NCBI GenBank assembly: GCA_973895155.1
Contig: OZ316897.1
Span: 10,129,832-10,193,831, forward strand
From: Marsupella aquatica
Lineage: Eukaryota; Plantae; Marchantiophyta
Direction of reading: 5' to 3'
Length of the DNA stretch: 64,000 nt
In this document: positions 3,620 through 49,051 of the stretch, in pieces
Layout of the letters: each line of letters opens with the position of its first letter
Numbering within the stretch: position 1 is the stretch's first letter
Notes under the pieces: generated by a model
What the model was told of the DNA's origin: nothing
What the model saw: the letters and a program-made list of their open reading frames with translations, nothing else
Database searches by the model: none
Position numbers and translations under genes: made by a program

Positions 3620-5332
3620 ACACATCTCGATGATGTGGCGCGCTGTGGTGCTAGGAAGTTTGGAAGGGACCTCCGTAAATAGCCCCAAGAAACCCCACCC
3701 CAAGGACCAGCCTAGGAGCAAAGGGACTAAACCCAGAAGCAAAGCAAAAGAACACCGGCACAGGCAGTAGCAACACCAAGACCCAAGAAAACAAAGCTCC
3801 TTGGCCCCTAGGTCAAGACTTTTGGTAGGGAATGAGTCCTAGTTAACCATTTGCTAATGGCTAAAAAATGAATTCATCTACAATCCCACATCCAGTGCAC
3901 AAAATGGCAGTCCCACTAGATTGGCCTAGGGTGAGAGAAAGAAAAGTCTCTAGGATTAAATAATCCCACCTGGTGTGTAAATTTCTGCACGTAATAGACA
4001 TAGACCTTCTCTTACCTGGTTGCTTTACAATTGTGATTGGAACAGAAGGTACTGCCACTGCAATCATGCCAACCTCTGCCCAGCTAAGGGGAGGTGGGTC
4101 AGACCTTTCAAATCCTTCAAATCCTCCATATCCTAGTTTGTTCTTGCACGGTTGTTGGTTAAAGTGTTGTTGTGTCGGTCCATGGCTCTAGTCACCATGG
4201 TAGCAAGTCCATCTTGGGCCTTAGTGATAGCAAGTTTTGTTTTGGGAGTCTTTGTCTGTTGCCTCGTCTGCTGTAGAAGAATGTCAACATGCAGCATGGC
4301 GCTATTGAGAATGAGATGCAAAGGTAATCTAGCAGATCGAGGGGACATTGAAAAATTTGGGGCATCTTTCAAGCCAAAGAGTATTAAGCATTTCAACCAG
4401 CAAAAGCATGTGCCCTGGATTCTCTTCTAGGTCTGGATGGCAGTGTCAATCTTACCAAAAAGTGAGAAACCAGCAGCTTTATCAAAAATTGTACTGTGGG
4501 CAACATGTTCAAGGAAGGCCCGCCTTTGAGTGATCGTCGGGCAGTCTTTGAACATGTGAGCAGAACTCCAATCTCATACAACTACAATTGGAATGTTCAA
4601 TGGCCATTATTGAAGCCCCACTTTAGAGCGCGAGAATGAATGAAAAAGCCAGAGTGTAAAACTTTCCAAATAATAAGCATAGCTTTAGGTGCACTCCAGC
4701 CTCTCCACAAGTGTTTCCATCGTTGGTGCCACATTGTGGTGGTGTCAAGCAAGTGCCATTGGCGACTGAGATTGAGGATTGGCATGTTGCAGTCTCTATT
4801 CATGTTGGCCCAAATATGTGTGGGGAGATTCCAGCCATGTTGTTCACTGTTGCCCGACTCCCAATTCCACCCTATTTTTTCCTTGGCTCACATTGAGGAT
4901 ATTCAACAAGTTATTCAAGGCAAGCATCTCCCTTGGCCTGGTTGTCCTAAGCTTATGTTATCTTGCATCTCAGCCACAATCTTCCACTGGCCAACATGTC
5001 TTCTGATCAGGATGCATGTCATTTATAGTTTTCACCTAACCTCCAATTCGCAAGACTCTTCAACTGCTTGTAGTTGTCTTGGCTTGAAAGTTGTAGTTGT
5101 CTTGTCTTGAAAGTTGTAGTTGCTTGTCAAGAAGATGCAAGAGTTGGTCAATTGAGAGAGATTGAGGCAATGTACTGGCTGAGGGTATGAACATCAGATT
5201 ACTACAAGCTCTATCCCATCCGTTTGGCAAATAGTTCAACATGGGGGCATTGGGGATTCAAATTCCCAGGTCAAGCAGCAAAGCAACATCCACATTCCAC
5301 CTTCTTCTCTCCTCGTGGGGCCCAAGGCTGAG
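3620..5332 (-). mobile_element. Highly degenerate element remnant, possibly LINE ORF1
   Basis: Broken minus-strand peptides (WKVLHSGFF, NMLPTVQF). The LPTVQF block resembles LPTIQF at ~53860. Boundaries approximate. Confidence 0.3.
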
Positions 5333-15230: not shown

Positions 15231-16094
15231 CTCTAAGGTCCTGGTGTGCAGCGGTGGTGTGCGTCTTGATATATAATATATATAGTCAAAAGACAATGCA
15301 CATTTGCCGCATGCAATGGTGGAGGAAGGGTTGAGGAGAGCAATCTAAGTCGTGGGCGAGTAAAGTAAGAATGTTTGGGTTTTTGCAGAATTTAGGGTTT
15401 ACACTTATTAAGTTGGGTTTCTTTGTAAATGTATAACTGCAAGGTTTCCTTTGTAATCGCTATTTCCTTTGTGAAATTGTGCAGTTATCAGGTTGTGCAC
15501 TTAGGGTTGCAGTTATGGGTGATTGTTTACTCGTGCCCTGGTTAAGTGCACATGTGGCTTTGTTAAGTTAGGTTTGCTTTATTAAGGTTTGCAGTTAGAG
15601 AGGTTTATGCGGTTATATGCGGTTATGTATCATGCACTTATCAATTTGGTCTTGCTTCGATGTTCTCACGATGGTTTTGGGCTGTTGTTGCTCTTTTTTC
15701 TTGTGTCCGCTCGTGACCTCTACTCTTGGGCTGCTCCCTTCGTTGTCTTCGATCACTCCTTCCTTTTTGCACAATCGTTTTGCCTCGAACCCCGATTTAT
15801 ATTTCTCCCTCGTGCCTCTTCATTTTGCTGCTTTTCTGGAAACTCGTTAATACATCGGGGGGTTTGAAGGCTCGCTTCATTTTCCGTTCGACATTAAGGA
15901 GGAGGATTCTCAATCTACCCTTGTTTTCTCTTGTTTCTTCGTTTCTCCTTCTTCACAGGTCTGTTGCTTGCACCGTCTACGATTTCGATTCGTCCATCTA
16001 GCTCTTAAATGACGAACAAAATTTTCCACGCTCTTGAATCGCTAGGGTAGCTAAACGACGTAAGGAAGAATTCTCTGCTCCGCTCATTGAGCTT

Positions 16095-16222: not shown

Positions 16223-17147
16223 CTTATCACTTTCATCACTCTTTATTATTGTTCGCTTAACATTTACTTTCTTTTGTAATTTTAAAACTTAATAATATAT
16301 TAACATTTATCTTTTCATGTTTTTATTAATCTTTGTGGAAACATTTTCTTTTCTAACCTAATCTTATCTTAGTAAATAGTAATCAACTTTTGTTCAACTT
16401 AATATTTTAATTCAACTTTCATTTATTCTTATAAGTTTTGGTGAAAAATTACATCAAGTTGTATTGGGAAGTCGTCTCTAGCTTTAGGCTCTTAATTCCT
16501 TGGCTCTCGTTGGGTCTTCTAGGCTCAGGTTCAACATAGATCGTAATCAAGCTCTAGGAACTGGTTTCCATAACAAGTCATTAGTCATTTCCCTTGACAT
16601 TCAGAGTAAAGTCTCATTTGTTGGCTAATAAATATCCTAACTTTGGCAAATAAATATGTTTATGTCATTTATTTGGCTGCCAAAGTTTCACTTGTCCTAA
16701 CTTTGACAAATAAATGTATTTCAACAAATTTTCTTAGCAAAAATATCATTATAATAATTGACCGCCCTAACTAAATGATTTGATTCGCATTATTTTCCTT
16801 TGTTCAGATTTCTTGTATCTTAACAATTGGAATGATGTCAGCCTAGACAAAATCAATTATCAATAATTCCAATCTTATGTACTATTATATGAATATATAT
16901 TTTCTCAATCTACTATTTTACTTGGACACACATGTGACCCCATATTTTTCATTAATTGCAGAGCCCATGTAATTACTTGTTTATTAATGATTTTTTTGCC
17001 TTTTATGTCAACTTCATTTAGTAGTGGCTTTGAAGAAAAAGACTATTTGTAGATAATTCAATTCAAGTAACAAAGTTATAGGGAAGAAATTCAATAAACA
17101 TTTGAGTACTTAAATGAAAAAATGACTTATTGATAATTGTATTAATT

Positions 17148-17881
17148 CCTTGGAATGGTTTTTTTTATAAATTTTAATACCGTGAAAGACCCCACGGATA
17201 GGGGGAACAACAGCCCTTAATACAGGGACAGCAACAGCACACTAGCGAGCCACAAAGAGAGCCCAAAAGCACAAAAGAGAGCATCAAAGCCCCAGGGAGA
17301 GCCCCCCCTCAAAGAAGGGAAATAACACCGATCAAGAGAGCACCCATGCCCTTCCCACAGCAGCCCCCCAAAAAGCAGACCCCTCAATCAGCAACGCCGC
17401 CGCTAGAGGGCACCAAGAGAATCCTGTCCCCACCCCGTCTCAGCCAGATTTGCCTCGTTCCCCGCAACCATTCCTGAGCCCGGTTCAACCGAGAGCGACG
17501 CCGCCCAAAGCGTAAACCAGCCCCAACCGCATGGATGTGATTGGCAGTCTCAGCAAGCATCAGGCCCAAGTCAAATGAACGTCCCACCTTGTCAGAGAAC
17601 ATATGTTCATTTCTTCCCAGCCAAATCATCCAGAGAGTCTGATATACACAAAAGATCCTAGCAGTGTGAATAGGCTCCGGTCCTGTTGATGCATCAAGAA
17701 TAGCCAGCAGACCACCTCCAATGGGTAAGCGAAGCTCCGTCAAAATCCTGTCACACATCCTCCAGCAACATGAGGCATGGGAACATTCAATGAACAAATG
17801 TTGCATCGTCTCCAAGACCCCACAGCAAAGCTTGCAATTCCCAGTACCAGCCTGGATACGGAGGGCCATATAGTAAAAGTA
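17148..17881 (-). mobile_element. 5'-truncated L1-like LINE (zf-RVT region + 3' UTR)
   Basis: CKLCCGVLETMQHLFIEC...LWMIWLGRNEHMF. 17-bp TSD tgataattgtattaatt at 17131-17147 and 17882-17898. Confidence 0.9.
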
Positions 17882-19571
17882 TGATAATTGTATTAATTGA
17901 GGATCATATAGTAAAAGTTGGGGGAAATTGAGTTTGTAATGGTTATCAATTTCCAAGATGGTCAATATGCGGGGACACATCACCAAAGATCATATCTTTG
18001 GGTTGGGCCAAGTTTAAACTATCTCAACACCATAGTTTCCCAACCATGTATCCTTTAATGAGTACTATTTTGTGTGATTTGAAGCAAGATGTTTTTTCTT
18101 ACTAGTATATAAAATCAATTGATGCATTTCCACGTATATTACAAACACAAAGTTTAATCTAAACAAGACCACATATGATGTCAATAGGGGCTACATAGCC
18201 AAGATGACCATATACCTAGTCTGAGTATAAAATTTGGGTGATGAGCTTTGGTGGTGGAGGCAACTGAGCAATCCAACGATACAAGAAGGGCTACTTTTAG
18301 TGAAGCCATAGCTCCTACCCTCTTACTCATTTACCATGGAATTTATTCACAAGCCCTGTCAAACTCTAATTCCAATTCTAATTCTAAAATTGTTAGATGG
18401 TCTACTTCAACGGGATAGTTAAAGAGTAGCAATTCTTCAAGCAATCAATCACAAAAAGAATAGATTTTATGTGTTGACCACAACTGATTTTTTTCATGGT
18501 CAACCCTTGCTACTCTTGTGAATCATTGATAGTCTAGATTGTTGAATTCAATGAATAGACAATCTTCAAAATCCTTCTAGTACATGCGTTGCTTCAATAT
18601 AATTTATGACTACATTCAATGACGTTAACTGATCATTATATCTTGGAAAATTAAATCTAACATACAACCCCTTAAACTCTCAAGAATCTCTTCAAATCCA
18701 ATTAGCTAGCTAGCATCCTGATCTCATTTGTTTTAATAGACCTAGAAATTTGTGAAGTTAATAGAGGGAAAAATGGAAGAAAAACTCAATATTTAGTGGT
18801 TAAAAGGCAATGGGGATCATATAAGACCAACTAGCTAGTTATGGACCCCAATAAGGGGTCTCTTGAAAATTCTGTGGCACATGAACATGCCACATTAGTG
18901 CGGATGTAGACAAATAGGAGTAGACATGTTTGTGAGAAAAATTAACCGCCCCTAGTATGTTGTGTTTGGGTCAGTTTTGCCGTAACATTTAGTGCATCGT
19001 GCCATCAAAACTAAGAGTTAAAACAATAATAAAAGTAACAAAAATACAAAGGGTGAGATGGATCTTCTCTTAAAAACATAATTATTTTTTAACATTTGCA
19101 TTTTTGTCATATTAAAATTAATCATTTATAAATTGTGTTTTCATTTTTTATTGAATTTTACTAATTGGATATATCAGTGTTTGAGAAAGGGAAGTTAAGT
19201 AACTGTCCAACACTCAATTCAATGGTGGAAGACCTTAGGTACATGCTGAAGGATAGTATGTCTCCCTCACCTAGAAGATTGGAGCGGTCTTGTCCTACTC
19301 AGAGAGAGGAATTTGCTTTTACCTGGAGTGGGCAACAACATCAATTAAGAGGCCTCAAGTGGGGAGGGCGGAAGTGGAGTGGAGTGGAGTGGAGTCGAAT
19401 CTAAGGAGTCATGGGCAAACTCAAACGCCCGTTGCAACATCTTGACAATTTTACATTACAGCACCACACTTGTTCTTACCAAATTTTTAAGTTCAACTTT
19501 GACTTGTAAAAGTCAACCGCAGAGTCCACAAAAAACAAATTTGTCTTGGGGTTCAAGGCATATAAAAAATT

Positions 19572-19734
19572 CACGTTCCTTTTGATGCTAGGCTATGCAA
19601 TTGCAGGTCACAAGAGCCAAGGGATGCACAATATCCAGCAAGGTCCTCTCGGACATAGATAATGCATTTGCACACGGGCTCGCCTATGTCATGCTGAGTA
19701 TGGTCACCAACAGGTCATTGATCCGCATTGTTGG
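19572..19734 (+). pseudogene. Pif1-family helicase C-terminal fragment (continues at 31464-31490)
   Basis: MLGYAIAGHKSQG/CTISSKVLSDIDNAFAHGLAYVMLSMVTNRSLIRIVG corresponds to SF1B motifs V-VI. The frame resumes as GNLSPHDFR after the nested insertion. Confidence 0.8.
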
Positions 19735-20943
19735 TGTCCAAGGAACCGTTTAAAGTGGTTGAAACATGGGCTTTCTAACTCTTAGTGACTCAATTTACAT
19801 TTAACATCAATTCATATGACCAATTCTCTTAATGTTGTCTGAAATCTCATCAAAAGGCTCTACTTAACATTAAATCTTCTTTTGTGTTTAACATTTTCAA
19901 ACTAGCAATGTTATTCTATCCACTATCTTACTTCTTAATGAGTCCCGTTAAGGTGTTTTTCTTAAATAACAGATGATTTGACTAGAAAGTTTAAATTTTC
20001 TCCAAAATGACAACTACTCATTTAAATTATCAACTCCAACAATAGGTAGAGAACATGGAATAGTTGCAAATCTATTCATTTTCTACCAGATCCTCTGGTC
20101 ATTGTGGTTAGGACGGAATGTGCATGAGTTTCAAGCGAATGGCTACAGGAAATTTGATCTATGATTCATATTATTGGAGGCAATCGATCATGTTACTGTG
20201 GTGGGCTTGAGCTTGCCCCTAGGCAGGCAGCGCACAAGAATGATGCGTGTTAAAGAGCTTATTAATCAGGAGATCAAGAGTGGTGTGGCTACGTAGTTGT
20301 CAGGTTTGGATCACATCTGGCTGAGGTCTTTTTGGATCTCAGGGACAAAGTATATTGTCGCCTTGGTTTATGGTTGATGGCTCGGGCATTGTGTGCATTG
20401 TATAGCTGGTTAGTTTGCCTTGCTCTATATTGGCCCTTGGAGGGCTCGAATACAGGAGAGTTGTGTATAGCTGGTTAGTTTGCCTCAAGTGATAGATATT
20501 GGCCCCCTAAATTCTGGGCGTGCATGATATGCTTGGCTTGCTGTTGGCCCCTACTGTTGATTTGGGGCAAACACAATCTGCATCACTGGCTGTCCTTCAT
20601 ATTGGGCATGGCTATTTCTGGTTTTTCAGTGCTGTGGGCTATATCCCCCTGCCACGGGGTCTTTCATGGTTATATTCCTTGGAATTTGTTTTCTTTATAA
20701 ATAAACCACGGAACCTCACGGAAAAGGGGAAACAAGCAGCCCAACGAGGGCATCAGAAGCACATAAAAAGCCAAACGCAGCCCAGGGCATAACCCTAAGG
20801 CACCACATCACACCGCCCCACACATCACACCGCCCCACACAGGGGAAAGCCCCCCAAGCACGGGGGCCAAAAGCCAGACACCAGCCAGGAAGCATAAGCC
20901 CACCTCAAAGATCAACAATAAAGCCACTACGACGAGAACCCAA

Positions 20944-23900
20944 CTAGCACCTACGCTGGGATGCAATCCAGTCCCTAGCTGCAAACAGACGCAACTGTTT
21001 CCTACCGTAGGGAAGTCCCCTACCCACCGCATAAAGATCGATTGCCACCTCAGACAGCACAAGCCCGCAGTCAAAGGTCCTAGCAGCCCCCACGTAGAAC
21101 ATATGCTCATTCCTAGCCCTCCAGAGCAACCACAGAACCTGATAAATGACAAACAGCTTGACACAATGAACGGGGTCCTTACCCCCCGCATCATCCAAAA
21201 GAGCAATTAAACCCTTGCTAACAGGCAGGCAGAGTGACGGCACTGTCAGTAGACACCTCTGCCAGCAGCGCACGGGCAAATCTACAGCCAAAGAACAGGT
21301 GCAAAATAGACTCCAACTGCCCTCCGCACAGCTTACAATCGCCATTGCTGACATCAATCCTGAGTGCCCGCTCGCCTGTGAACAAACCACCCACAATAAT
21401 CCTCCATAGGAAGGTCTTGGCATGAACCAAAAGATCAGATCTCCATAGCCGCATCCACCCAACATTCCATTCCAGCTCCGACTTGGACACTGACCAGATG
21501 CGATTCAGGCGGGCAATAAGTGAAAGCCTGGGCCTAAGGAAGTCATATATCCTGTAATTAGCAATTTTGAAGTCCTTCAAAACCCTGTCATTATCTGCCC
21601 ACCGCCACTGTTTAGCCGTGGATACCCTGTCAAGACTGCACGAGTGTAAGCTCCATATTTTCACCAGGAATTTCATGGCTAGCCCTCTAAGATCTGCTGT
21701 GAATCCCCTCAAATGGTGCCAGCGTAGTGGAAGGTCCTTCCAGCAGCTTCCTTCCAGCAGCTTCCTTCCTTGCACCAGCCATCCCTTATTACTCCAATAC
21801 CCAGTCTCCCACAGATTGTTGCAATCCCTGTGATCTCTAGGTTCGGCAAACAGTTGAATTCTACTAGGCAGCGCAGGGTATCCTGAATACTCCAGCATCC
21901 CGGGATCCCTCCCTCACCAGGGACAAAAGAGAGATGTGCTCTCACCAAGGCCCACGACTTCCAGAGCCCTGAAGTATAAGGAAGGCCTCCGCCAGTTCTC
22001 GGTGTGCAGAGGAGCAACCTATCCAGGAAAGAATATTTGTTCCTGCGGATAATCTTATAATTCGTCCATCCCATAAGCTCCAAATTAGCAGCCAGCATTC
22101 GGGACCATTCCGTTTCTGGGAAGTTGAGTGCCTTGATGAACCACTGCGCGAGTAAAGCTTCCGAGTGACTCTTGAATTCTTTGAACCCCAGTCCACCCTC
22201 TACCTCGGGGAGAGTCAGCTTGGACCATGCCACAAGCGGGATCTTCTTCCCACCAGCCGGATTATAGCCCCACAGAAAGTCTCGGCTGAGAGCAATAAGT
22301 TTCTTGGTAAGGCCAGCCGAAGCTTTAAAATGCATGACATGATAAATCGGGATGGCTTGCAACACATGCTTGACTAACAATGAGCGACTAGTGAAAGACA
22401 GAAGCTTGTTGGTCTAGGAAGACAGACGAGCGGCCACCTTATCCAGACAAAATTTATGGAGCTACTCCGTATTCAAACCACTCCCTAGAGGAGCCCCCAA
22501 ATACTTTTGCACTTCACCTGGCCCACTCACCAAACATTCAGAATCTGTGAGCCACCCAGGGATGCGTTCAAGGGCCAAAGGGATCACTATTGACTTCCTA
22601 AAGTTCAGTCGAGCTCCAGTTGCCGTCTCATAACATGCCAGGGCTGCCTGGGCCTGTAATAAAGCAGTCTCCTTGGCAGGGATGAACATCCCCACGTCGT
22701 CCGCAAATAGTCGGTAGCACATAGAAAATCCCTTTGAAATCTGAATGCCGCTGAGTCTACCCGCCGTCATCTCCGCCTCCATAAAATCCATAAGCGGTTG
22801 AGTGGAGATAACAAAAAGCAAAGGGGAAAGGGGAAAGGGGGCAGCCCTGTTTGACTCCACGTCTGAGTTCAATCGGACCTGCGCAGCAACCATTCACAAG
22901 AATAGTCGAAGAAGCCAGTGACAACAATGCTCTCACTAGTTTGATGAAGTGCCCGCTAATTCCTAGCAATTGCATCCTCTCCCAAACATATTCATGGTTT
23001 ACTCTATCAAATGCTTTTTCAAAGTCCAGTTTCAAGAAAAGGGACGGTTGCTTCTTGTTGTTAACCCAATCACATGTAAGCCATGCCAAAGAGATATTCT
23101 CCAAAATGTGGCAACCCGGGATAAAGCCGGTTTGCTGAGGGCTGATGATCTTATTCAGAATCGGTTTGAGTCTCAGGGCAATGATCTTGGCAATCACCTT
23201 ATAAATTGTGTTAAGCATTGTAAGTGGTCTCTAGTCTTTCAGGAATCTCTTATCTGGTTTCTTGGGGATGAATTTGATTAGGCCGTCCTTGATCCCGCAG
23301 TCGAGCTCTCCCGTCAGCCAAAAGTCCTGAATCATGTTCACTAGATCCACGCTGATAAAGTCCCAACAAGCACGATACACCTCTGCAGTAAGTCCGTCTG
23401 GACCAGGGGATTTGTCACACGGCAACATCCAGATTACCTCCTTAATCTCCTTCATGGATGGGAGTTCCTCCATTCTCTTAATCTTTGTGGCTGACAGTGC
23501 AAATCTAGTGTGTTGCAGTAGCCTACATCTTTCCTTGCACTGCTCAGCCATTTTGGCCTGCATGGGATTCGGGGGACAGTAAAGCTCAGTGCACAACTTT
23601 TCTACCTCCTTAAGAATCAAGCCAGCGTCCGTGATCACACTCCCATCGTCACGTACAAGCTTGGTCATGGCTTCTCTTGCTCTCTTCGCCCTTACTGTAG
23701 CAAAGAAAATTTTTGTCGACTCATCCCCTTCTCCGAGCCACTTCACCCTGGCTAACCGGCAGCCACTATCGGCCTCCTCAAACTCGGTGGCGTGCAGTGA
23801 GTCCTCTGTTTCAATAAAATAAAAAATTCCGCTTCCGTTGAAGAGTCGATCAAGGATGTTTTGAGCATTCTCAATTGTTCTCTTAAAAAGGCTGTTTCCT

Positions 23901-24848
23901 CTTCTGCCTTCTTGGGTTGAGCCTGCAAAGTTTTGTATGTGCGTCGCAGCGCCTTGCTAGCCCTGGCAAATCGGCGATGAGGCTCCTCTACCCCAGTGCG
24001 CCCTTCCTCCCAAGCAGCAGCGAGTTGCTCCACGTCCTCTTTACACCTTAGAAGAGCAGGGTTGGCTTTGAAAATTCTGTATCTGCCTCGAGTACCTCCT
24101 GCTGCAGGCCCAGCTAGGCGCACCTTCAGCAAGACCGGATCATGGTCTGACAAAACTGAACCGCCCTCATGATAGAGCTCCACAATTTCATCGAGCCACC
24201 AGCCCTGCTTGCTAATGTAAAATCTATCCAACCTTGACTGCACAATTGCCCCAACCGCATTCTCCTCCAAGTGTATTTGGAACCTTCAGCACCCCCTTTG
24301 AGCACAAAGGCATCTTCCAGATCCAGCCTCACCTTTAAGAACCTCCAAAATTCTGCTTTCCTGCCCCCAATCAGTGGTGAGACTCCCATGGCATCTCCCC
24401 GGTTCTCTATCATGTTAAAATCACCACATATAATCCATTTAGCCATTGGTAGGCCCAACTTGAGATCGTTCCACAGCACAGACCGCAGTCGTGACGAATT
24501 AGGTGCATAAACCAAAACTACTCCAAAGGTGCTTCCCAATATCTCCATCACTGTCCATACTGCTCTTCCAAGATCTAACGTGCCTGATGCCACCACCTTA
24601 AATTTCGGGTGTATGAGTAGCGTTGTCCCTCCCCTGCCTTCATCCGGTGCAGATGAGAAGTGCTGATACGAGGGAAGAATGGCTCTAAGAGCCATGTCAA
24701 GATGAAATTGGTCAGTTTTAACTTCCTGCATTGCCAAAATGCTTAACGGTGCCTTCAATGACTTTGCCCAATTTTTCATGACATGCCTGCGGTTAGCCTC
24801 GCAGAGGCCGCACACGTTCCAAGATGCCAACACAAGCATTTTGCTCAT
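20944..24848 (-). pseudogene. LINE ORF2: AP-endonuclease, reverse transcriptase, zf-RVT; multiple stops and frameshifts
   Basis: LASWNVCGL, MQEVK, GDFN, SRLDRFY, SDHDP, KSPGPDG, LKLDFEKAFD, GVKQGCPLSP, LFADD, KYLG, CKLC..ESILHLFFGC. Confidence 0.95.
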
Positions 24849-24901
24849 CTGGTCCCCTAGCAACGTGAGCGAGTGAGTACCTCCTTGTTCCCCCCAGAGC
24901 A

Positions 24902-27900
24902 CTAAATACGGGCTCGTCCGCCTGGCGACCTCCCCATCTCCAGAGAGCTCACCCCGCCTCTAGGTGAGACAGCCACCCGCAGCAGAGTACCTTCCCCCTC
25001 CCGCCGTGGAGTCTTGCCCCCAGTCCCGCTTCCGCCCAGTTCCCCCCCTCCCGGGTGCGCCATACCCACCAGCTCCCGTGTCACTTGTTGTCCTACGTCC
25101 GCATCAGACAAACAGCATCGTGAGAAGTTAAGTGATCATTGTTTTTTAGCTTCTCCTTTTAATTTCTCGCTAGCATCCGTTGTCCGGTGACCAGTTTAAA
25201 GCGTTATAAAAGTAGACTTTTTAATTCTTTTAGGGACTTGGATTTATCATAGTATTTTCTTAAGTTAGTTTAATCTTTCTTAAACCTAATCAGTTTCCAT
25301 TTTAAATACAAAATTACACTAAAATATTTTAACTTAAAACACTAAGTTTCTACTTTCATCTAAATTCGATGCATCACTCACATTTCCATAACAATTAAAC
25401 ACTTTTACCACAAGAGCATTTCATCATTTCGATCACATAAAATAATCCAAACTCATCTTTTTATTTCAATCATTTTCAAAATATGAAGTTTGGTTCGGGT
25501 TTACAAAGTGTTTTTTGGTGACTCATCTCCTAACTCAGGTCTCTCCACTAAATTCAGCTCAATCATCAGGTCAGGTCTCGGCCTCAAGCTCATCGATGGT
25601 TTCCCCCAAACATGTTGGACACAATTTTAGTCTCCGCCGAGCTTCCTTCACGTCATCGCTCCTCTTCTCTCCTCAAGTTTCCAGTCCCAAAGCAAAAAGA
25701 ACTTACGGCCGCTATCCTCATATCCCATGGCAGCGGATTGTCCCTAATTTAAAAATGGTTTCTATCACCGGATTCCACTCACTAAATGAATGCAACTCAA
25801 TTAACTTAAAATCCTCTTTAAAATTCCACAACATCAGATGTAAAGATTTACAAGTAACCCACACTTCTAGCTGAAACTTCTTGGTTAATCTCATGGAAGA
25901 TCACTTCTTCTCCATGGTCCATGACAATTAAATTTAATCCATTGCTCCTGGCCTCCATTTTTCACTTCTTTCTTCTCGGAACAAAATGTTGTTATGAACT
26001 AAGGAGTTATGGAACCTCTTGCAGTCGAGCTCCTTTTTATCACCAGATCAACTACGATGCCTCCCGAATTCTTTTCTTGATCTCAGTATCTCATCTGCTT
26101 CGCCTTGTTTCAACCGGCTGTTACTCCTTCTTTCATCTATTAACGCACGACCTCTCCCTGGAGTTTTTTTTTATGCTGTCATGTTCTCCAAAGAATTTTC
26201 TTCAAAACAAACCACGAAATCCCAACACCTCTATCTTCTTCTCATTTCACAGCATCACGCCAGCTTCACCTTGTTCACCCGAAAACCTCCCAACAGCTTC
26301 AACGTTCGGCAGCACGCTTCCCTTGCCATTCTCTCTCCAAAATCTTCCAAAACTACCGTGTGCCTCAGCCCTCACTCGAGAATTCCTTAAAACTCATCCT
26401 CGCCACCACCAACATTCATTGCCACTCTCATCAATTCTCGTTTTTCTCTCTTGCGTGCCCAACTTCCCGTTGTCTTCGCCTTGCAAACTTCATTCTAACC
26501 TCCGCCTCAACTGCAACAAGCACAATGTCCTTATGGAATTTGAATCTTCTCAGCCTGCCACGTGTCTCTTCCACAATAAAAGCCTCAAATCCTTAAGTCT
26601 AAGCTTCACTTCTCTCTTTTTAATTCCTATTCTGTCTTATTGAACTTCTTCCACAACAACAAAACTCACACCCAAACTGAATCCCTTCACCAAATATCTC
26701 CAACTCAAAAATAGGGCCTTCACTTCCCTTCCTCTATTATCCATCTCGACGACACCGTCGGGGGGGGGGGGGGGGGGGTCCTAATCTCCTGCTTCCGTGC
26801 ACATGCCTTAAATTTACTTTTAGAGATGTAAGCTTCGTATTTCGATATTTCCGCATCCGAGTCCTCATGATAGGAGAAGTTCTCGTTCCTCTCCACCTCC
26901 GAAAGAGAGCCTGGTAAGCGAGATATCATTGCAGCACTCCCAATGGGAGATGGAACCGGCCCAAAGCACACTGCATTTGCATCGAGAGAAGGACTTCACT
27001 CTTCCCAGTTGTTGTCCTTGCTCCAAAGGACCATCAGGTACCATCAAAGCCGACGATGTCATAACCGGCCCGACTATAGCCAACCTGTCCCCCTCAACAG
27101 AAGCGCGCACCGTTGGTGTTGCTCTGATAATTGCCATAGTTCTTGCTGCGCTTGCCAATAGCACCTCATTTGGGCATCCCCCACTCTCAGTAAGGAGTTG
27201 CTCCACTTGCACTATGTTAGCCACCACTGATTGTGGCATCGTTCCACGTGGAGGAATACCTCGTGCCTCACGAAAATCCTTCCGAGCCGCGGCATTTTCC
27301 ACTGCTCTTCGCACCTCCTCCACATCGGCTTCTAATTGATGCTCGTCATCTCATTCTTTCGGGTACTCCTTCTTAGCCTCCGTGGGGGGAATTTTGTCAA
27401 TTCCCTCTTTGCAGCTGCGTGCCAAATGCCGCTTTTTATTACATTTGAAATAGTGGTAAGGTATGTTACAGAAGGTAATAGATTGCCAAATCACTATATC
27501 TTTGCGTATCCGGATTCTAACGCTAGCCGGGACTTCCCTATCAGAATCCCACAGGATACAGGCTCTATCATGCGGAAAAGAGCTAAATTCATCTCCTTGT
27601 ATGTAGTACAGCAGAGTTCCAAGTGAGCTTGCGATTTTCCTCCTCTAGCCTTCCAAGACAAGATCACGAAATGGGATTTCAATCCAGATGGGAAGTTTGG
27701 TAAAGGACTCATTTTTGATATCAAACGATGGGTCCCACGGGAATGTGTACACAAACCGATGGCCCATAAACCACGGGGCACAATTAAGAGCCATGTCTCT
27801 GTGATCAGGATGCTCAAAGACAATAAGATAAAAGCTTTTCCCCACAAATTTAACTTGTAGAATCGACCAATTCCCTTGGTTAGTCATCTCTTCCTCCACC

Positions 27901-28602
27901 CAGGACCTGAATACCGGCAGCAACGGAGGTCTATCCGTAAAGAAACATAGAATCGCACAGTTGTATAATTGTTTAACATTCATAGTGGCTTCGGCCATAT
28001 TCCAGTCCACCGTAGCATACAATTTCTTGTCTAGATCCCCCTTTCAGCGGAGAGCAATGTCACGCAAGATTCTGGTGCACTCCTCAGACTCCTCCTCTGC
28101 CTCTCCTTCCTGCCTCATGCGCGGAACCGGGATTTTGCAGAGCTCTCCCAACATTCCTTGCAACAACGGGCGTGGGCCCAGTGCTGAGCACAGCCCCTCG
28201 CCATGGCTGATCCGGTAGTGCTTCCCATGGGTTCGATGAATTGCCTATTTCAAGCACCATTCGGTCCGCCCAGCTCTATTGCTTTGAAAGTCCAACCGTA
28301 GCTCGTGCCCCTGCATTCCAATTGAGTTCCCACGCTCCATTTGCGCCTCGCATAGGCACGTCCCCACTTATCCGGGCATCTTGAGCCAAGAATCGATCCC
28401 TCGGATTCCCATTCTCCTTGCACAACCTTCCGTGGCCACCGTCGTCCTTGTTTCTGTCACTACCCCCAGTCCTTGCTTCTTCCATCAGCAAGTCGCAAGC
28501 CGGATCACCAGATGCGTTCCGAGGTTCCACCGTGCGCCGACCCCCGCGCACGCCTCTGAGCCGTGCAAGAGGCTCCACCAGTCCATAGTATTCCTCCGCC
28601 AT
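24902..28602 (-). pseudogene. LINE ORF1 (DUF4283-like + knuckle), disrupted and interrupted by solo LTR B
   Basis: ILCFFTDRPPLLPVFRSWV...APWFMGHRFVYTFPWDPSF...LPIWIEIP. Degenerate knuckle YFKCNKKRHLARSC near 27420-27455. Confidence 0.85.
25181..26754 (-). mobile_element. Solo LTR copy B (1574 bp)
   Basis: TG...CA termini with a perfect 4-bp TSD CCGT (25177-80, 26755-58). G-box GACACGTGGC near the minus-strand 5' end; AT-rich/AATAAA block near the 3' end. Confidence 0.88.
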
Positions 28603-31490
28603 CTTCTTCCTTACCTTCTTTCACTACCTTAAAGAATTTTGCCCCTCAGTACCTTCATCCAATGTGTGATACCGCAATGCTTATCTGCCACTTATCCACC
28701 ACTGTTGCTCGCAAACCCGATTCTAGCCCGCCACGGCCTCCAGTCATGCGCTGCACATGGGGCATCTCAACATCGTTCAACTATGGTGTGTCTAAGCACG
28801 ATCGTAGCAAAGCACCCATACGAGTAGTCCGCGAGGATCCTATCAAGACACCACACTACACTCCACCCTCGTCCTTCTGAATTAGTCCATGTTCTTGACT
28901 TCTTCACTAAAGTTGCTCTCTTCAGAAATAGTATTCAACCACCCACGTTGCATCCTAGTTCAATCGTGCATCGTAGCTCTGCATTGACGGGAACTTTACC
29001 CAATCGCAGACGCGATTGTAGCACAAGTGCCTTGTATCGCCTCCTTCAGACCGGTTCTTAGTACATAAGGTGTGCCTCCTTATCAAGACCCCACCAGCAC
29101 TTGTAACAATTTGAATCCCTCTAGGAAGCTCCTCGTCTCACTTCCCAGTGCTAAACTCTCTGGAATCTGTCACCCGCACATACCGCACTAATCCACTTTA
29201 AGACCTAAACCTTCAATGACGGGTTCCCAGATGTGGAGAGATCGAGAAAGAGCAAGAAATGCTTCATTCCCTTTCATGGTTATATTAATAAAAGAAAACA
29301 AACTTCAAGGAAATTATCAACTCTTCTTTTTATCTTTTATTTTCAAACATCATTTATGTTTATTTGATCACATTCTTAAGGATTTCACACCATTTGCAAG
29401 TTTTTTTTTGGTTTTTTGAAAGACCATGCATTTTATCCACAAAACATTTTTGTTACAATCAAAACTTTCAAAAATACATTTTATTTGTAATAAACCTTTT
29501 TGAGTCTTAGGATTTACAGCATTTTGAAGTTTACTATTCAACTCTTTTGTCGGTCTTTCATCAGCAAGGTCTCAAACTCAGTTCAGGTCAGGTTGTCAGG
29601 TCTTCTTGCTCAGCTCAAGCTCAGTTCATTATCATCCCTTTAGTCTCCTCCTTTCATCCCTAATGTTCTCTTTACAAAAACTTCCCACATCACACTACTC
29701 CTCTACAAAAGTGGTCTCAATAACCAGGTTTCACTCATCAAAATTAACCAAAAATTCTGGTACATTTTTCCTATTTGGGTTCCTAAAAACCAAGGTGAAT
29801 TGACGGGAAATAGAGATCCACATTTCTAATTGTAAGCTCTTGATAACCTGCATACTTGTCAACTCTAATTGTCTATATATGGTCTCCTTGAGATATCTCA
29901 TACACAAACTCATCCTCTGTCGTGCTTTGGTCCAATTATCACATACCGCGTGCATCATACCCCATAGCTTGAACTACATACTTTTCATGAAACAATGCTC
30001 TATTCTTTCATCATTTCAGCTAAAATTTAACATGCCACCTTCAATCATTGTTGCCTGACTACTCCCGCTGCCATTTCACTTCTCTAAATCCGACAGCCTT
30101 GCCACTCTTGTCTATTTTTCAGCATTTGAATTTCATAGTCCTCTAAATGCGCCTCAATCTCTCGGATCTTCCTCCAAGATGCCATGACAACCTCTGATCA
30201 TTTATTGCTCAATCTTAGCCTTTGTGACCTCTACTATCCAATTTCTACCGCAACGTCCTCATAGCCTCCTCAGTCTCTACGACCTCCACTATCCACGGAT
30301 CTCTTTTCCACAATCAAACACTACGCAACGTCCCTAATCTCCTCAATCCCTAGAATTCTCAGTTCCAAAGCAAAAAGTTATCAGTCCACATTCATTTCCT
30401 CTAATCTTCTCTTATCAATTCACACAACGGCCTTCCAAACGACTCCTTTGCCTGCTGCTTCTCCGAGAAAATATCTCTCTTTGAACTCTCTCCGTGAAAC
30501 CACAACGAACAACCGACTCTATCTCTCAAGTTTCTCTCAAACTTTTACAATTTCAAGAAACCTTCAGCAATTTTAATTCATTCTGCCAAAAATTTCCCTC
30601 TCACTACCATCGACCTTCGCTGCTGCAATTTGCCTTACCGACCTTCAGTGCTGCATTTCTTTGTATTGACCTTCACACCTTGCTGTCCTTCAAAGCCCTT
30701 GACTCACCCTGAGCATTCTTCAGAAATCCTTAATCACCATAGCATCCTGCTTTAGAACTCCTTTTTGCCTTCGATCCAATTCCTTCACATTAACCACATC
30801 AACAACTCATCATAGCCCTTTGCTCCTTTTCAGTTTTCTCTCTATACCCACCATAGCCCTTGAATCTTTACAGGAAAACTCCCCCCCCCCACACACAATG
30901 ACAATGCTTCTTGGACTTATCAAAATCCCCATAGCCCTTCATCTCTCGTTTGCCTTCCTTCTCCAAAAACTTTCCAACAGCCACAATGACAACGTCCATG
31001 TGCCTTCCTTCAGCAGCACCTATTTTACATTTCAACACTCGGATTCCCTCTACCCTAAGTTGCACTCAAATTCCCTCAGCCACTAAGCGCGCTTCAAACT
31101 CTTAGATCAACTCCCCACACACACAAACAACGCACACTTAAAAATTGTCTCAGGCCTTTGCTTCATGCCTTCTTCACCCAAAAGACCAATTCCACAACAA
31201 CAACCACGATGCATGCCCACAATAGCTCAAACTGCCCCTTGTGCCCAAGTTCTCAAATTGCCCCTTATGCCACGTGTCTCAACCAGGAAAACTCCCCAAA
31301 AAAACTTTCTAACCCTTCCTTTCATTTGCCTTCTTATTCCTCTTTTGTCTCATTGTTTCTTTCTTTTTTCAATTAATTCCCCTCTCAAACACAAACCACC
31401 ACCAAGTGTCTTCAACTCAGGAATAAGGTTTCCACTTCCCCTCCTTTTTTTGGCCCAACGACATCGGGAACCTCTCGCCGCACGACTTCA

Positions 31491-33542: not shown

Positions 33543-36500
33543 TCATGGTGTAGCAGCAACCTCCACGGTCATCATGTGTCGCACGCTTTGCAGTCCAATC
33601 GCTTGGCAGTGTCGATGATGAATAGTTGGCGATAGTGATTTGGTGAAGAGATCCGCACAGTTGTCTACACTTGAAATCTGTAAAATATTGATCTTTGTTC
33701 CATGTAACTCATGGGTGTAGAAGAACTTCGGAGCTATGTGCTTCACTTGATCGCCTTTGATGAATCCTTTTGTGATCTGCTGTATACATGCTGCCTTATC
33801 CTCAAAGATATTAGTAGGCTTCATTAGTGTTGGCAGGCCGCATTTAGTATTGGTGTGATTTATAAAAGATCATAACCACACGGCTTCGCGACTAGCTTCA
33901 TGTAGAGCTAAAATCTCTGAGTGATTCGATGAGGTTGCTGTTAGGGTCTGTTTCACGCTTTTCCAAGAAAAAACGGTACCCCCTATAGTAAAAACATATA
34001 TGATTTGGGATTTTGGGGTGTCAATGTCGAAAAGATATCCGACATCTGCATATCCTGTGAGTTTGTGGTTTGCACCGAATGGGTAAAATAACCCGGTATC
34101 AATGGTGCCATGCAAGTACCTAAATATGTGCTTAAATCCGTTCCAGTGTCTGGCTGTGGGGGTTGTACTGTGCCTATCTAGTAAGTTAAGTGCAAATGCA
34201 ATGTCTGGTCGGGTCTGATTTGCTAGATACATTAATGCTCCTATCGCGGAAAGATATGGAGTTTCCGGTCCTAATAGTGGTTCGTGTTCTTCGCGTTTGC
34301 GAAAAACATCAGTGTTGTTTTCTAATGAACATACCACCATTGGAGATGTTAATAGGTGTGCTAAGTTCATATTGAACTATTTTAGGATCTTTTCAGTTTG
34401 TGTTGTCTGATGGAGCATCATGCTAGTGGGTAAGATCTCTAGTTGTAAACCTAAACAACAGTTTGTAAGGCCAAGGTCTTTCATCTCAAATGCTATTTTG
34501 AGATGGGTAATAGTATCTTCTGTAATTTGGGGTGTCCCAAATATGTTTAAGTTGTCGACATAAATAGAAACAATGACATATTCGTCATCCATGTGTTTAA
34601 TAAATAAACATGGAGTAATTGCATCATGGGAAAAACCCATGGAAATCATCTCATCAGTGAATCTTTGATGTCATACTCTGCCACTTTGTTTCAAGCCATA
34701 TAATGCCTTCAACACGCGGATAGCTAGTCCACGACGAGTATGCCGTATGGCTGACACAGGGGTGTCATTTTGATGAGTTACATGTGTAGATGACACACGA
34801 GGTGTAACTTGATGTGTTTGGTTGATAATCTTATATAAATATGGAATATGCAATGTAGCGCCTTGAGTTAAAGCTCGACGACGTTCCTCCAACTCGAGAG
34901 ATGATCGCATGTATAGACAAGTGTCTAAAGTTCCATATAGATATGCGGTCGCGACATCTAGTTGTCGCATCTTAAGTTTGTAGAAAATGGCAAATCCGAT
35001 AAGGTATCGAAATGTTGTGCTGTCCATAACCGGTGAGTAAGTTTCATCATAATGGATTCCCGGTTGTTGGGTAAATCCTTTCCCTACCAGACGTGCTTTG
35101 TGGCGTACAATTTGGCCTTTATCATTTCTTTTGCGGACGAAGGTCCACTTGTAGCCAATGAGATGTACGTCTCTCGGTGTTGGCTCAACTGGGCCAAAAG
35201 TGTGTCTGCTTAGTAGGGAAGCTAATTCTCCATTGATAGCTTTTTGCCATTCATGCCAATCTGGTCTGTTTTGGCATTCTAAGATGGAGATTGGTTCAGG
35301 TGTATCGTCATTGATATGTGTTGCCACCATTAATGCAAAAGCATCATCTATTGAAGTAGTAGTTCTATCCCATATCGCACCGGTGTGTGCGTAGTGGATA
35401 GAGATCTCTTCATGAGTTGTAGAATCAGCATGATCTACATTAGGTGAAGGAGGGATAGATGAACCATGCCTTCTTGGTTGTTTATCTTTTGATCCCAAGG
35501 GTCTGCCATGTTTGGCACAAGGCTGGGATGTACTTGCTGGCTCACTTGATAATTCGATGCGAGCGGATGCTCTCACAGCTGGAATATGTGAGCGGATAAC
35601 TTGTGATGTATCGACAAAAGCGTCGGGAAGTTCTTCCACAATCTTGTGGAGTTGCAAAATTTGCTTAACTTCTTTCTCCCCTTGATTTGTTCTAAGGTCT
35701 TGCCAAAATGGCGAATGTCTCTCCTACTCCAAAGGTGGTTGTGGGTGTTCAGGGGTTATTAATGGTGGATAAATATGCTCATCAAAATGACAATCTAAAA
35801 ATCTGGCTTTAAAAATATCGCCCGTTGTAGGCTCCATATATCTGATGATGGACAGTGAGTCAAATCCGATATATATCCCCAACTGTCATTGGGGTCCCAT
35901 CTTGGTTCGTTTGGGTGGAGTAATGGGGATCATTACTTGACATCCAAATGAACGAAGGTGGGATAGATCGGGTTTGATACCGTTAGCAATTTGGTATGGG
36001 CTATAAGTATTAAAAGCTGATGGGCGGTATTGAATTAATGCGTTAGCCTGTAGTATGGCATGTCCCCATGCTGAAACAGGGAGTTTCGACTGCATTAGTA
36101 ATGAGTGTGCAATTAGCTGAAGGCGTTTAATGACAGCTTCAGCTAATCCATTCTGGAAATGCGCGTGCGGTACAGGATATTGTACATCAATACCTAGTGA
36201 TGTACAGAAGTCGTCAAATGTTTTAGATGTGAATTCCCCTGCATTGTCCACCCTTAGTGTCTTAATGGGGTGATCGGGAAATTGTGCCTTCACGCGCAAG
36301 ATATGCGCCAAGATGTGAGGCATAACCATGTTCCTCGTTGAAAGCAAGGTCACATTTGACCATTTGGTTGATGCATCGATCAGTACCATAAAATAGCGAA
36401 ATGGTCCGCTCGGTGAGTTAATGGTCCGCAGACATCCGCATGTATGATGTCCAAGAATTTTGGTATCTTGGTTGATAATTTTGATGTCGTGGGCCTTGTT

Positions 36501-38204
36501 ATTAGTTTGCCGCGTGAGCATGCAATGCATGGAGTGCTAGCTGGAATGTGGTGTATGTTAGTTGGAATGCCTCGTGAGTTCTTAATAATTTTTCTTAGCA
36601 TGGATTGACCGGGGTGGCCAAGGCGTGCATGCCAAAGCGCGGGCAATTCACTTGGTTGTGCATTATTATGCAAACATTCAATTTGAGTTACGTAAAACCC
36701 GCATGGGTACGAGAAAAGAGTCTCTTTAATGATTTTCCCCATAGGGGTATTTTCAACCAAATGGATTACTTCTTGGTCTTTTGTATCGCCTGTGTGGACG
36801 TGTAGTCCATTTGCTCGTATATCCCTAAAGCTTAGAAGATTACGGGTTGCATTTGGGGCAAAGATAGTTGATTCTATCTGGATTTCTGTACCCTGTGGAA
36901 GTCGAATAGAAGCTGGGCCGAAGCCCTCTTCTATCTGGCTTGGACCATTGATAGTGGTCAGTAATCTACTTGAAGGTGTGATCTTGTGGAAAAGAGTTCT
37001 ATCCTGAAGGATAGTATGAGTAGTCGCACTATCAATAATGCATGTGCTGGGACTATTTAGGTTTGGGGTTGTGGAGCTACTCACCACTAAATGTGCCTCG
37101 GGTTGCTCAGGTGTGTCTGAAAAATCTTGAAATAAGTCTCTGGATTCCATAAACGCCCCGTGGGTCTCACGAGGTGGTGCCCTTGGGTTTTGGCCATCTT
37201 TTAGAGATTGTTGGTATAAATCTCTAAGATACTGTGGAATCCTATAGTTGCGGGCCAGATGGTTGATCATGCCACATTCGTGGCATCTTGGTCGTTCTCG
37301 TTGTGGTCGAGGTTGAGGCCAATCACTTTTGTGGTCATTTTGGTATCTCCTTCCACCTCATCCGTGTCCACGATCGCGTGTGAAATTGTTGCAAAAACTC
37401 TATTGTTGTGGGTGCCCGTTTGGGCGACCTCTAAAGGCCCGTCGAAAGGCACCGCATTGCTGGTGTTGGTTGAAGAAACTTCCCCTATTGAGGTGTTTCT
37501 CCTATTACCATTCTTGGCGCGCTTGTCATCCTGCCTTGATGTGGAGGGTCCAGCGTGGTCGATGTGATGGGTTTCTCTCTCTAGTCCTGGGGGTAGTGTG
37601 CCCGCAGGACGTTTCCTAGAGTTAACTAAAAGGAGCTCTTGGTTCCTTTCTGTTACTAGGAGGTGGGCGATGAATTCTGAGTATTGTCCGAACTTCATGT
37701 TCCGGTACTTGGTTGATAGTAGCACGTTAAAGAGTGGAATGTGGACAAGGTTTTTTCTAGCAAGTCCTTGTCTGCGGCTGGCTTGCCACAAAATGCAAGG
37801 GTTGAGGTGATTCTGAATAGCTCACTATTGTAGGTTGAAATGGATGTAAAATCCTGGACCCGTAAGTTTAGCCATTCTTGGCGGGCTCTAGGTAGTTCGA
37901 CCAATTTCTGGTGGTTGAATCGAGTCTTAAGCGTTGTCCATAGCTCGCGAGGGGTGGTGAGATGCATGTACTGTCTCTGTATGAACCTATGGATATGGCG
38001 TCTAAGAAATACTAGGGTCTTTGATTCATTGGCCTTGGTTAGAAGATCTGGTTGAGGTTCGTCTGCTAGTATGGGTTGAGTTATCCCTATAGCTGGGAGT
38101 AGGATTAAAGAGGTCAGGTTCTCCTTGAGGTTCATAGACCACTCGAGGTAATTGTTATCATCGATTTCTAAGGCTGGGAAAGTCAATTTCTCCAGGTTGG
38201 CCAT
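33543..38204 (-). pseudogene. gag-pol: copia gag-pol polyprotein with several stops and frameshifts
   Basis: Knuckle CHECGMINHLARN, protease IIDSATTH, GAG-pre-integrase LWHARLGH, integrase RVDNAGEF/QNGLAE, RT KARLV/ALYGLKQSGR/IYVDN, RNase H FEDKAACI/ADLFTKSL. Confidence 0.95.
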
Positions 38205-39460
38205 CTAGGGATGCTATGTCTCTAGCTTTCTAAGTTCCTTTTAATGGTAATTGAGGCTTATGTACTAGTACGTATAGTAAAAGTCGACAAAACACATTTA
38301 TGCGGCATGCAGGGTAGGTCTGGGTGAAGAGGGCATGCAAATCTGAAATTCAATTTTAGGTTTTTCACTTAGGATTTAGGTTTTCCTTGTTATTTGGTTA
38401 ACTACAATGTTTCCTCTATATTTGCTCTTTTCTTTGTTAATCAATTTATCGATGTTTTGCCGTTCATTTTTGCTCGTTTTCTCCTCCCACGGTCGGCTGC
38501 CCTTGTTCGTTGCTTTGTTCTCCTAGTGCACTTGGGCCTTCAATTCCGCTTTAGGTCTCTTGTCTCCCCGATTCTCCTCCCTGCTGCGATGTTTTCTCTT
38601 TGGGTTCCTCCTATTCAATCTCGGTGCTTCGTTCTTGGGTTCCAGGCTCTTCTAGAATTTCTAGGATCGTGGGCTCCAGGCTCGTGCTTCTTCAATTTCT
38701 GAGGTTGCCTTTTGTTTCAGCCTGGCTCTTCTTTTATTGCTGATTGTTGCCTCCTTCTATTGTCCTTATGGTTGCTCTCGAGGCCTCACAGTTTCCTATG
38801 GGCGCTGTTACTCATTCTTCGTGTCCTTTCAAATCTCCTCTTGCTGCCTGGGTTTCGTGGCTGCGATTGCTGGCTATCCAATTGGCAATTTTGCTTCCAT
38901 TCTTTCTCGATCCTCCATTGAAGGCTGGGTGAAGGATTGCTGTTGCCCAGATACTGTTGTGTTTCAATCAGGGGCTGTCACTAGATCCCGGGAGGCAGAT
39001 TTTGGTTTCTTCTCAGGTTCTGTGTTATGGGAATTGGGGCTGATTCTTTTATCAATTTGCTATTTCTATCTCCTTGTCAATGTTTCATGTCTCTCTCGCG
39101 CCTGTCCTTTCTCTATGAGGTTTCCTCTTCTTAATCCTTGGAACTTTCAATTCTTTTGGTTTCTTCAATTGCTCTCGTTGCTGCATTCTTCAATCTCTCT
39201 AGGACTTTTCAATTGGCATTGGGCGCCTGCAGGGTCCTTTTGGGTTTCTCTTCGAATCCTACTTTGTTCAATCCTCAATTTTTGATGCTCTCCTTATCAA
39301 TTTATTTCTCAGCATGTGGCTCCTCATTGTGTTCTCGATCCGTTTTGATCCAAAGCAGTTGAATGTTCCTTATGGTCTCTTTTTCTATTCAATGCTTTCT
39401 TTCAATCTCCATAGCCCTTCGAAAAGAATTCATGGCCTCCTTGCTCAGCCACGGAGAGGC

Positions 39461-48224: not shown

Positions 48225-48858
48225 GGCTTGGAGAATGCTCTAGGGGGGCTTTACAAGACAGTGGGGCTTGGAGCATGCTCTAGGAGGGGCTTTACAAGAC
48301 AGTGGGGCTTGGAGCATGCTCTAGGAGGGGCTTTACAAGACAGTGGGGCTTGGAGACTGCTCTATGGGGGGCTTTACACGAGAGTGGGGCTTTGAGAATG
48401 TTCTAGGGGGGTTTTACAAGAGAGTGGGGCTTGGAGAATGCTCTAGGGGGGCTTTACAAGACAGTGGGGCTTGGAGCATGCTCTAGGAGGGGCTGTACAA
48501 GACAGTTTCAAGACAGTGGGGCTTGGAGACTGCTCTAAGGGGGGCTTTACACGAGAGTGGGGCTTTGAGAATGTTCTAGGGGGGTTTTACAAGAGAGTTG
48601 GGCTTGGAGAATGCTCTAGGGGGGCTTTACAAGACAGTGGGGCTTGGAGCATGCTCTAGGAGGGGCTTTACAAGACAGTTTCAAGACAGTGGGGCTTGGA
48701 GACTGCTCTAAGGGGGGCTTTACACGAGAGTGGGGCTTTGAGAATGTTCTAGGGGGGTTTTACAAGAGAGTTGGGCTTGGAGAATGCTCTAGAGGGGGCT
48801 TTACAAGACAGCGGGGCTTGGAGAACGCTCTTTGGGGGGCCTTACAAGAGATTGGGGC
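48225..48858. repeat. Minisatellite, ~15 units of 40-41 bp with a 4-unit higher-order repeat
   Basis: Consensus ggggcttggagaatgctctaggggggctttacaagacagt; unit variants recur every fourth unit. Confidence 0.97.
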
Positions 48859-49051
48859 TGCTCAGTGCCTCTACATGGCCATTTCCTTGCACTAAAGTTA
48901 AAAAAGACCTAGCCAAAATGTGGCTGTTGGATGTCTCTCTATCCAAATCAAAGCTGATGGCCATCTCATTGCACAAAAGTTGAAATTTCTGGGCCAAAAT
49001 GTGTCAAGTTTGGAAGTTATTAATACAATTGCCTGACAAGAAGCTGCCATT

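Follow-up and report, generated by a model that had tools for sequence, protein, structure and literature searches.

A stretch of 64,000 nucleotides from the liverwort Marsupella aquatica (contig OZ316897.1 of assembly GCA_973895155.1, positions 10,129,832 to 10,193,831 of the forward strand), called the window below, contains three long interspersed nuclear elements (LINEs), named here E1, E2 and E3. E2 is full length, although decayed, and is inserted in the tail of E3; the other two copies are 5′-truncated (Table 1). Typical L1 elements of plants end in poly(A). The three copies in the window end instead in CAAGG, which is placed directly against the target-site duplication (TSD), and their last 58 nt are conserved between copies that are otherwise highly diverged. 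In this report we describe the elements and their junctions, and consider how such a 3′ end may have been produced.

Results

Identity and divergence of the elements

The second open reading frame (ORF2) of E2 is broken into pieces, but these still match the Pfam domains Exo_endo_phos (8.7e-11), RVT_1 (6e-22) and zf-RVT (4e-11), and its ORF1 matches DUF4283 (1.2e-9). In tblastn alignments, E2 is collinear with a full-length relative from another sample, L001, which encodes an ORF1 of 760 amino acids and an ORF2 of 1228 amino acids. In the truncated copies only the end of ORF2 is left: E1 retains a match to zf-RVT (2.7e-4), and the remnant in E3 (20045-20272, tblastn) is 34% identical to E2. 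Thus, an APE-type endonuclease and a reverse transcriptase in ORF2, a C-terminal zf-RVT and a DUF4283-containing ORF1, all characteristic of plant L1 elements, are present, whereas the 3′ poly(A) tail is missing in all three copies. Judging from this domain architecture and the best hits, the elements belong to the plant-type L1 clade.

The C-terminal parts of the ORF2 proteins are 41.6% identical between E1 and E2, and the range between copies is 34-42%. At the protein level, therefore, E1, E2 and E3 are to be seen as three deeply diverged sublineages and not as one family. A first-pass annotation of this DNA had described an L1-like LINE family; the domains confirm the L1 type, but the notion of a single family does not survive these low identities.

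The distance between ORF1 and ORF2 in E2 is ~1.6 kb greater than in L001. Foreign DNA of about this size is nested between the two ORFs of E2 and is 77-85% identical to positions 5357-7855 of the window (self-BLAST). It is probably a solo long terminal repeat (LTR) or a fragment.

Table 1. Positions of the LINE copies, their junctions and other features in the 64-kb window
Feature	Position	Strand	Description
E1 body	17148..17866	-	5′-truncated LINE; last ~160 amino acids of ORF2 and ~236-nt 3′ untranslated region (UTR); CAAGG terminus at 17148
E1 tail module	17148..17208	-	Putative CCCC...GGGG helix, alternative CCGUG...CACGG helix, AU-rich stretch, TATAAA 16 nt from end, terminus
E1 helix region	17176..17208	-	
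E1 A-poor UTR stretch	17183..17408	-	
E1 TSD, 3′-side copy	17131..17147		17 bp, exact repeat of 17882-17898
E1 5′-junction filler	17867..17881	-	15 nt; first 14 nt repeat flank 17905-17918; read directly
E1 TSD, 5′-side copy	17882..17898		17 bp
E2	20677..29270	-	Full-length (8.6 kb), decayed LINE; CAAGG terminus at 20677; sits in AT-rich E3 tail
E2 tail module	20677..20733	-	TATAAA 17 nt from end
E2 helix region	20700..20733	-	
E2 A-poor UTR stretch	20712..20937	-	
E2 ORF2 homology	20974..24638	-	Many frameshifts
Foreign DNA nested in E2	25216..26754		~1.5 kb, approximate boundaries
E2 ORF1 (DUF4283)	27390..28079	-	Many frameshifts
E2 TSD, 3′-side copy	20661..20676		16 bp; made of E3 sequence
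E2 TSD, 5′-side copy	29271..29286		16 bp; made of E3 sequence
E3 main part	20037..20676	+	5′-truncated LINE with the C-terminal part of ORF2 and a 3′ UTR; split by the E2 insertion at 24 nt from its end
E3 helix region	20642..20676	+	
E3 last 24 nt	29287..29310	+	AATAAA hexamer, A-rich tract, CAAGG terminus at 29310; tail profile match
E3 TSD, 5′-side copy	20024..20036		13 bp
E3 TSD, 3′-side copy	29311..29323		13 bp
zf-RVT fragment	4603..4869	-	Fourth, more distant LINE fragment
Copia-type retrotransposon body	34671..37270	-	RVT_2, rve, gag_pre-integrase
Stretch beside Copia body	37456..38206		750 bp
BTB/POZ ORF	45471..47066	-	Intact, single exon, 531 amino acids
Tandem array	48225..48859		~630 bp, unit ~41 bp

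Insertion junctions

The TSDs were located by an exact-word search and then verified by direct reading. In all three copies they are perfect and directly adjoin CAAGG, and each of them begins with AA (AAA in the case of E3). No untemplated A is present between CAAGG and the TSD in any copy. Moreover, the base that precedes each 5′ TSD copy differs from the final G of the element, so the TSD starts exactly at AA and every A is accounted for. The pre-insertion sites read TT/AA for E2 and E3, and TC/AA for E1. TT/AA-type sites are the usual pattern of the L1 endonuclease. The hallmarks of target-primed reverse transcription (TPRT) are all present, namely TSDs of 17, 16 and 13 bp, 5′ truncation in two copies next to one copy of full length, and TT/AA-like nick sites. 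E1, E2 and E3 are three independent insertions of an old L1-clade LINE lineage. In these respects the first-pass annotation was accurate: it had placed the termini at 17148, 20677 and 29310, assigned each insertion its own TSD of 13-17 bp, and noted that all TSDs start with AA and that two of the sites are TT/AA.

The 5′ end of the E1 body (17866) is the point where every alignment with the closest relatives starts, and the C-terminal zf-RVT match falls within E1. An apparent LINE homology past the 5′ TSD of E1 (to 18106, 25% identity) was dropped, as both these alignments and the Pfam match end at the boundary. Between the body and the 5′ TSD copy lies the short filler listed in Table 1. The flank repeated by this filler is located 6 nt outside the TSD, and the match is exact over 14 nt. 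The filler looks like the trace of a template switch to target DNA close by, made while the 5′ end was being joined. Twin priming was considered for the E2/E3 pair and dropped, given that the two are 34% identical at the amino acid level and that E2 has a 16-bp TSD of its own.

CAAGG is found at each of the three junctions. This recurrence is the single observation in favor of the idea that the motif (CCTTGG if read on the opposite strand) comes from the target, as a sequence that insertion prefers, and not from the element. However, CAAGG is enclosed by the two TSD copies in all three insertions, which makes it element sequence. In addition, the window provides an internal empty site: when E2 and one copy of its TSD are removed, the restored E3 tail aligns to the tails of E1 and E2, and the site of E2 insertion contains no CCTTGG. 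A target preference of this kind, which the first-pass annotation had named as one of two findings that would overturn its interpretation, is thus contradicted on both counts, and we consider it extremely improbable.

A conserved module at the 3′ end

The last 58 nt of the three copies are 69-73% identical to one another, whereas the upstream 58-nt blocks are 44-57% identical; shuffled 58-mers gave a mean of 50% and a maximum of 61%. Since the last 58 nt stand far above the upstream blocks, which are at the level of shuffled sequence, the tail is under a constraint of its own. A tail that has changed far less than the remainder of the element is the pattern expected of LINEs with 'stringent' 3′ recognition. 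This conservation between diverged copies also shows that the element itself encodes the A-rich tract as well as CAAGG. The first-pass annotation had already suspected a templated tract, on the ground that two copies share the same interrupted one; E2 and E3 indeed have AAAGAAAACAAA in common. Two further matches to a pattern of A-rich sequence followed by CAAGG, at 39136 and 63272, are unrelated sequence.

From 5′ to 3′, the tail consists of a putative CCCC...GGGG helix, a U-rich stretch ending in CRYGG, an AU-rich stretch, a hexamer (TATAAA or AATAAA) and an end of the form YUYCAAGG. The hexamer is positioned 16, 17 and 18 nt from the end in E1, E2 and E3, respectively. Base composition changes sharply in this region: from -260 to -35 the UTRs of E1 and E2 are U/G-rich and contain 5-7% A, and the last 35 nt contain 40-51% A. 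Theoretically, such an A-poor UTR could prevent a T-ended primer from annealing anywhere but at the end of the element.

Two overlapping helices seem possible by eye. One is CCCC/GGGG; the other is CCGUG/CRYGG, with its 5′ arm in the loop of the first. The helix region is also found in relatives, among them L003, L006 and L009. Taken together, the two helices would form an H-type pseudoknot. In the second helix, one position changes among G-C, A-U and G-U, again by eye.

A profile of the conserved tail, run against the 64-kb window, detected no copy besides E1, E2 and E3, and hence no partner short interspersed nuclear element (SINE) in that interval. It follows that the three copies were not selected out of a larger set.

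Relatives in other samples

A word search of protein collections with the zf-RVT piece of E2 gave no match, and a full HMMER protein search returned only relatives, the nearest of them 36-46% identical over long alignments. An alignment query of the same kind of collections added one short contig. As nothing above 46% identity was matched, the copies of this genome are absent from the protein collections searched. A metagenome scan with the exact tail pattern yielded 0 matches; a scan with a protein profile yielded two distant angiosperm-type L1 elements, one with an RNase H-like extension, which were uninformative.

The relatives' loci belong to other samples, and no TSDs could be assigned to them. 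Usable 3′ ends are available for L003, L005, L006, L009 and L011, while the sequences of L002, L004, L010 and L012 stop too early and the 3′ end of L001 has no recognizable tail. L003, from a Logan run, ends inside the helix region. L006 and L009 come from one and the same Logan run: the former has the helix, TATAAA, 15 nt and then A8, and the latter has the helix with a compensatory change, ATTAAA, 18 nt and then A8CA6. In L005 (NCBI assembly GCA_965154635.1) the helix is followed by 5 nt and then by A17. L011, from a JGI metagenome, has an A-rich end. The A17 of L005 is very probably a tail; no TSD was found for this element within 6.5 kb upstream. From these ends, the wider lineage seems to use polyadenylated RNA. 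The CAAGG motif is specific to the copies in the window and does not occur in the relatives compared.

The relatives bear on two other explanations of the missing tail. First, the elements could be ordinary poly(A)-dependent L1s, with a tail length that varies from zero up, of which three old copies happen to lack tails or have lost them. Three copies are a small sample, relatives do carry A-runs, and the majority of plant L1 families terminate in (A)n (PMC3472496). On the other hand, perfect and directly adjacent TSDs imply that no tails were eroded, and zero A would have to recur in all three copies even though their sublineages are ~35-42% identical at the amino acid level. Furthermore, a relaxed reader of poly(A) has no need for a conserved non-A terminus and a 58-nt tail. 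We therefore regard this explanation as unlikely. Second, the last ~11 nt may have been added as an invariant 3′ extension, such as an ancient 3′ transduction, behind an ancestral end made of a hexamer and poly(A), so that the A-rich tract would be a relic tail. The end of E1, a pure A8 followed by 11 nt that are not A-rich, has this appearance. Yet relatives from other species also have 15-18 nt between the hexamer and the end, which makes this arrangement an old one, and the absence of a tail after the extension would still be left unexplained. This possibility is very unlikely.

Other features of the window

The zf-RVT fragment near the start of the window is 24-40% identical to various LINE ORF2 proteins, and no CAAGG-type tail is recognizable in it. 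The stretch beside the Copia-type body recurs at 14480-15232 with 79% identity. The best matches of the BTB/POZ ORF, several Calypogeia fissa paralogues, are 67% identical to it, which places the genome among the leafy liverworts. The tandem array was delimited by self-BLAST, with offsets of 40-41 nt.

Discussion

Possible mechanism of 3′ end selection

The explanation that we consider probable is that the RNA is cleaved, and probably polyadenylated, after CAAGG, that the 3′ module is recognized, and that reverse transcription starts from the junction between the UTR and the tail. The hexamer, together with the A-poor, U/G-rich UTR, would serve the element as a cleavage/polyadenylation signal of its own and would set the 3′ end of the RNA after CAAGG. 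A poly(A) tail would probably be added at this cleavage site. The ORF2 protein would bind the conserved module, as in 'stringent' recognition, and the L1-type endonuclease would nick the target at TT/AA. Synthesis of the cDNA would then begin at the UTR/tail junction, where the terminal TT of the primer may pair with at most the first two or three A's of the tail. With such a start the poly(A) would not be copied, and the last G of the element would come to lie against a TSD beginning with AA. A junction start would thus account for three features alike: the lack of poly(A), TSDs that all begin with AA, and the conserved tail.

Cleavage/polyadenylation signals of plants have this layout, with a hexamer placed 15-18 nt before the end and a U/G-rich UTR in front of it. 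Because the hexamer resembles a poly(A) signal and the relatives end in A-runs (8 to 17), we think that the RNA is cleaved and probably polyadenylated, and we take a polyadenylated RNA read from its junction to be the simpler interpretation. Here we depart from the first-pass annotation, which had proposed a precisely defined, non-polyadenylated RNA end, made by cleavage or by initiation at a fixed position. The fixed end and the L1-like TT/AA nick stand, and initiation at a fixed position agrees with the mechanism above; a non-polyadenylated RNA fits less well with the hexamer 16-18 nt upstream and the A-runs of the relatives.

Several points weigh against the mechanism that we propose. The sample comprises three copies from one 64-kb window, so a family-wide claim rests on n = 3. 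The A-runs of L006 and L009 may be A's of the target rather than tails, and G/A is not the usual cleavage dinucleotide in plants. The RNAalifold consensus helix has 4 bp and a single change affecting both sides (C-G to U-A in L009), which is weak structural support, and single-sequence folds are no better than those of shuffled sequences (z ~0). Finally, that the RNA is polyadenylated, that the protein recognizes the module and where exactly synthesis starts are all deduced from sequence.

The alternative closest to this mechanism is an RNA that ends at CAAGG and has no poly(A) at all, either because cleavage is not followed by polyadenylation or because the tail is removed. TPRT would then begin at this end, unpaired with the target in the manner of R2, and the AA of the TSDs would reflect the preference of the endonuclease alone. 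Such an RNA would explain the zero untemplated A's in all three copies and the terminus kept across deeply diverged copies; moreover, the terminal GG is unable to pair with the TT of the primer. However, there is an AAUAAA-type hexamer at the ordinary distance for cleavage and polyadenylation, relatives of like tail architecture continue into A-runs, and an Rfam scan of 16500-30000 (E up to 1) detected no ribozyme and no known RNA, and thus no known RNA-processing motif. Although sequence alone cannot separate a tail-less RNA from a polyadenylated RNA read from its junction, we find the former possible but rather doubtful.

Comparison with known LINEs

In the survey of plant L1 elements by Ohshima (2012, PMC3472496, Table 1), (A)n terminates 224 of the 233 families of flowering plants; the other 9, like 5 of the 15 green-algal families, lack a 3′ repeat. 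From one monocot lineage and one alga, the same author proposed that the ancestral L1 of green plants read a specific 3′ sequence and that this recognition was later relaxed to poly(A). The monocot lineage was recognized as stringent by the criterion applied above to the window copies: its divergence is 0.14 in the last 45 nt and 0.57 overall (PMC3472496).

This monocot lineage, named 1a (LINE1-1_ZM, with ZmSINE2/3; PMC3472496), is compared here with the window lineage by its features. Both are land-plant members of the L1 clade in which the last ~45-58 nt are the most conserved part. A short hairpin near the end was proposed as the recognition signal in the monocot elements, and a similar one may exist in the window copies. 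In contrast, poly(A) repeats terminate the monocot elements, while the copies in the window have no poly(A). Two motifs are conserved at the monocot hairpin, UCU in its loop and CGAG on the 3′ side of its stem; of the window copies, only E1 and E3 have UCU, and none has CGAG. The monocot lineage also has a known SINE partner, whereas none was seen within the 64-kb window.

The mechanism that we favor resembles the model for SART1 of the silkworm, a member of the R1 clade, as far as this model is outlined in PMC3472496: the RNA is polyadenylated, a structure in its 3′ UTR is recognized, and reverse transcription starts precisely where the UTR meets the poly(A). According to the same outline, SART1 differs in its clade, in being telomere-specific and in that its genomic copies retain poly(A).

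With human and typical angiosperm L1s the window copies share the APE endonuclease and the reverse transcriptase, nicks of the TT/AA type, 5′ truncation, TSDs 13-17 bp long and, at the very 3′ end, a poly(A) signal. In those elements, however, the poly(A) that is copied varies, and a conserved sequence for 3′ recognition is lacking. The Repbase L1 families with no 3′ repeat (9/233 and 5/15; PMC3472496) are similar in belonging to the L1 clade and in having no terminal repeat; they are tabulated with neither TSD-level junctions nor a mechanism.

Finally, R2 and other LINEs that prime with no poly(A) have a fixed, encoded 3′ end, as seen here, and in both cases the RNA may not need to pair with the target. 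Unlike the copies in the window, R2-type LINEs belong to a different clade, use a restriction-like endonuclease and insert site-specifically. A truly poly(A)-free land-plant L1, with an RNA ending at CAAGG and an unpaired start of reverse transcription guided by the 3′ module, perhaps as a pseudoknot, is a tentative idea to which we give little credence. If true, it would represent R2-like initiation within the L1 clade, and the lineage would be a present-day representative of the 'ancestral stringent' L1 that Ohshima proposed for green plants; undiscovered SINE partners with the same tail would then be probable.

Both stringent plant L1s and L1-clade families lacking a 3′ repeat are already known. 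What is new here is a stringent-looking L1 lineage of land plants whose copies carry no poly(A). A literature search, with most subscription journals outside its coverage, returned no description of the 3′ ends of liverwort LINEs. The lineage in M. aquatica contributes a case from an early branch of the land plants to the proposal that green-plant L1s were ancestrally stringent. It also means that poly(A) cannot be used as a marker for LINE boundaries in bryophyte genomes. The 58-nt tail itself is a concrete module that can be tested and that can serve as a probe for partner SINEs.

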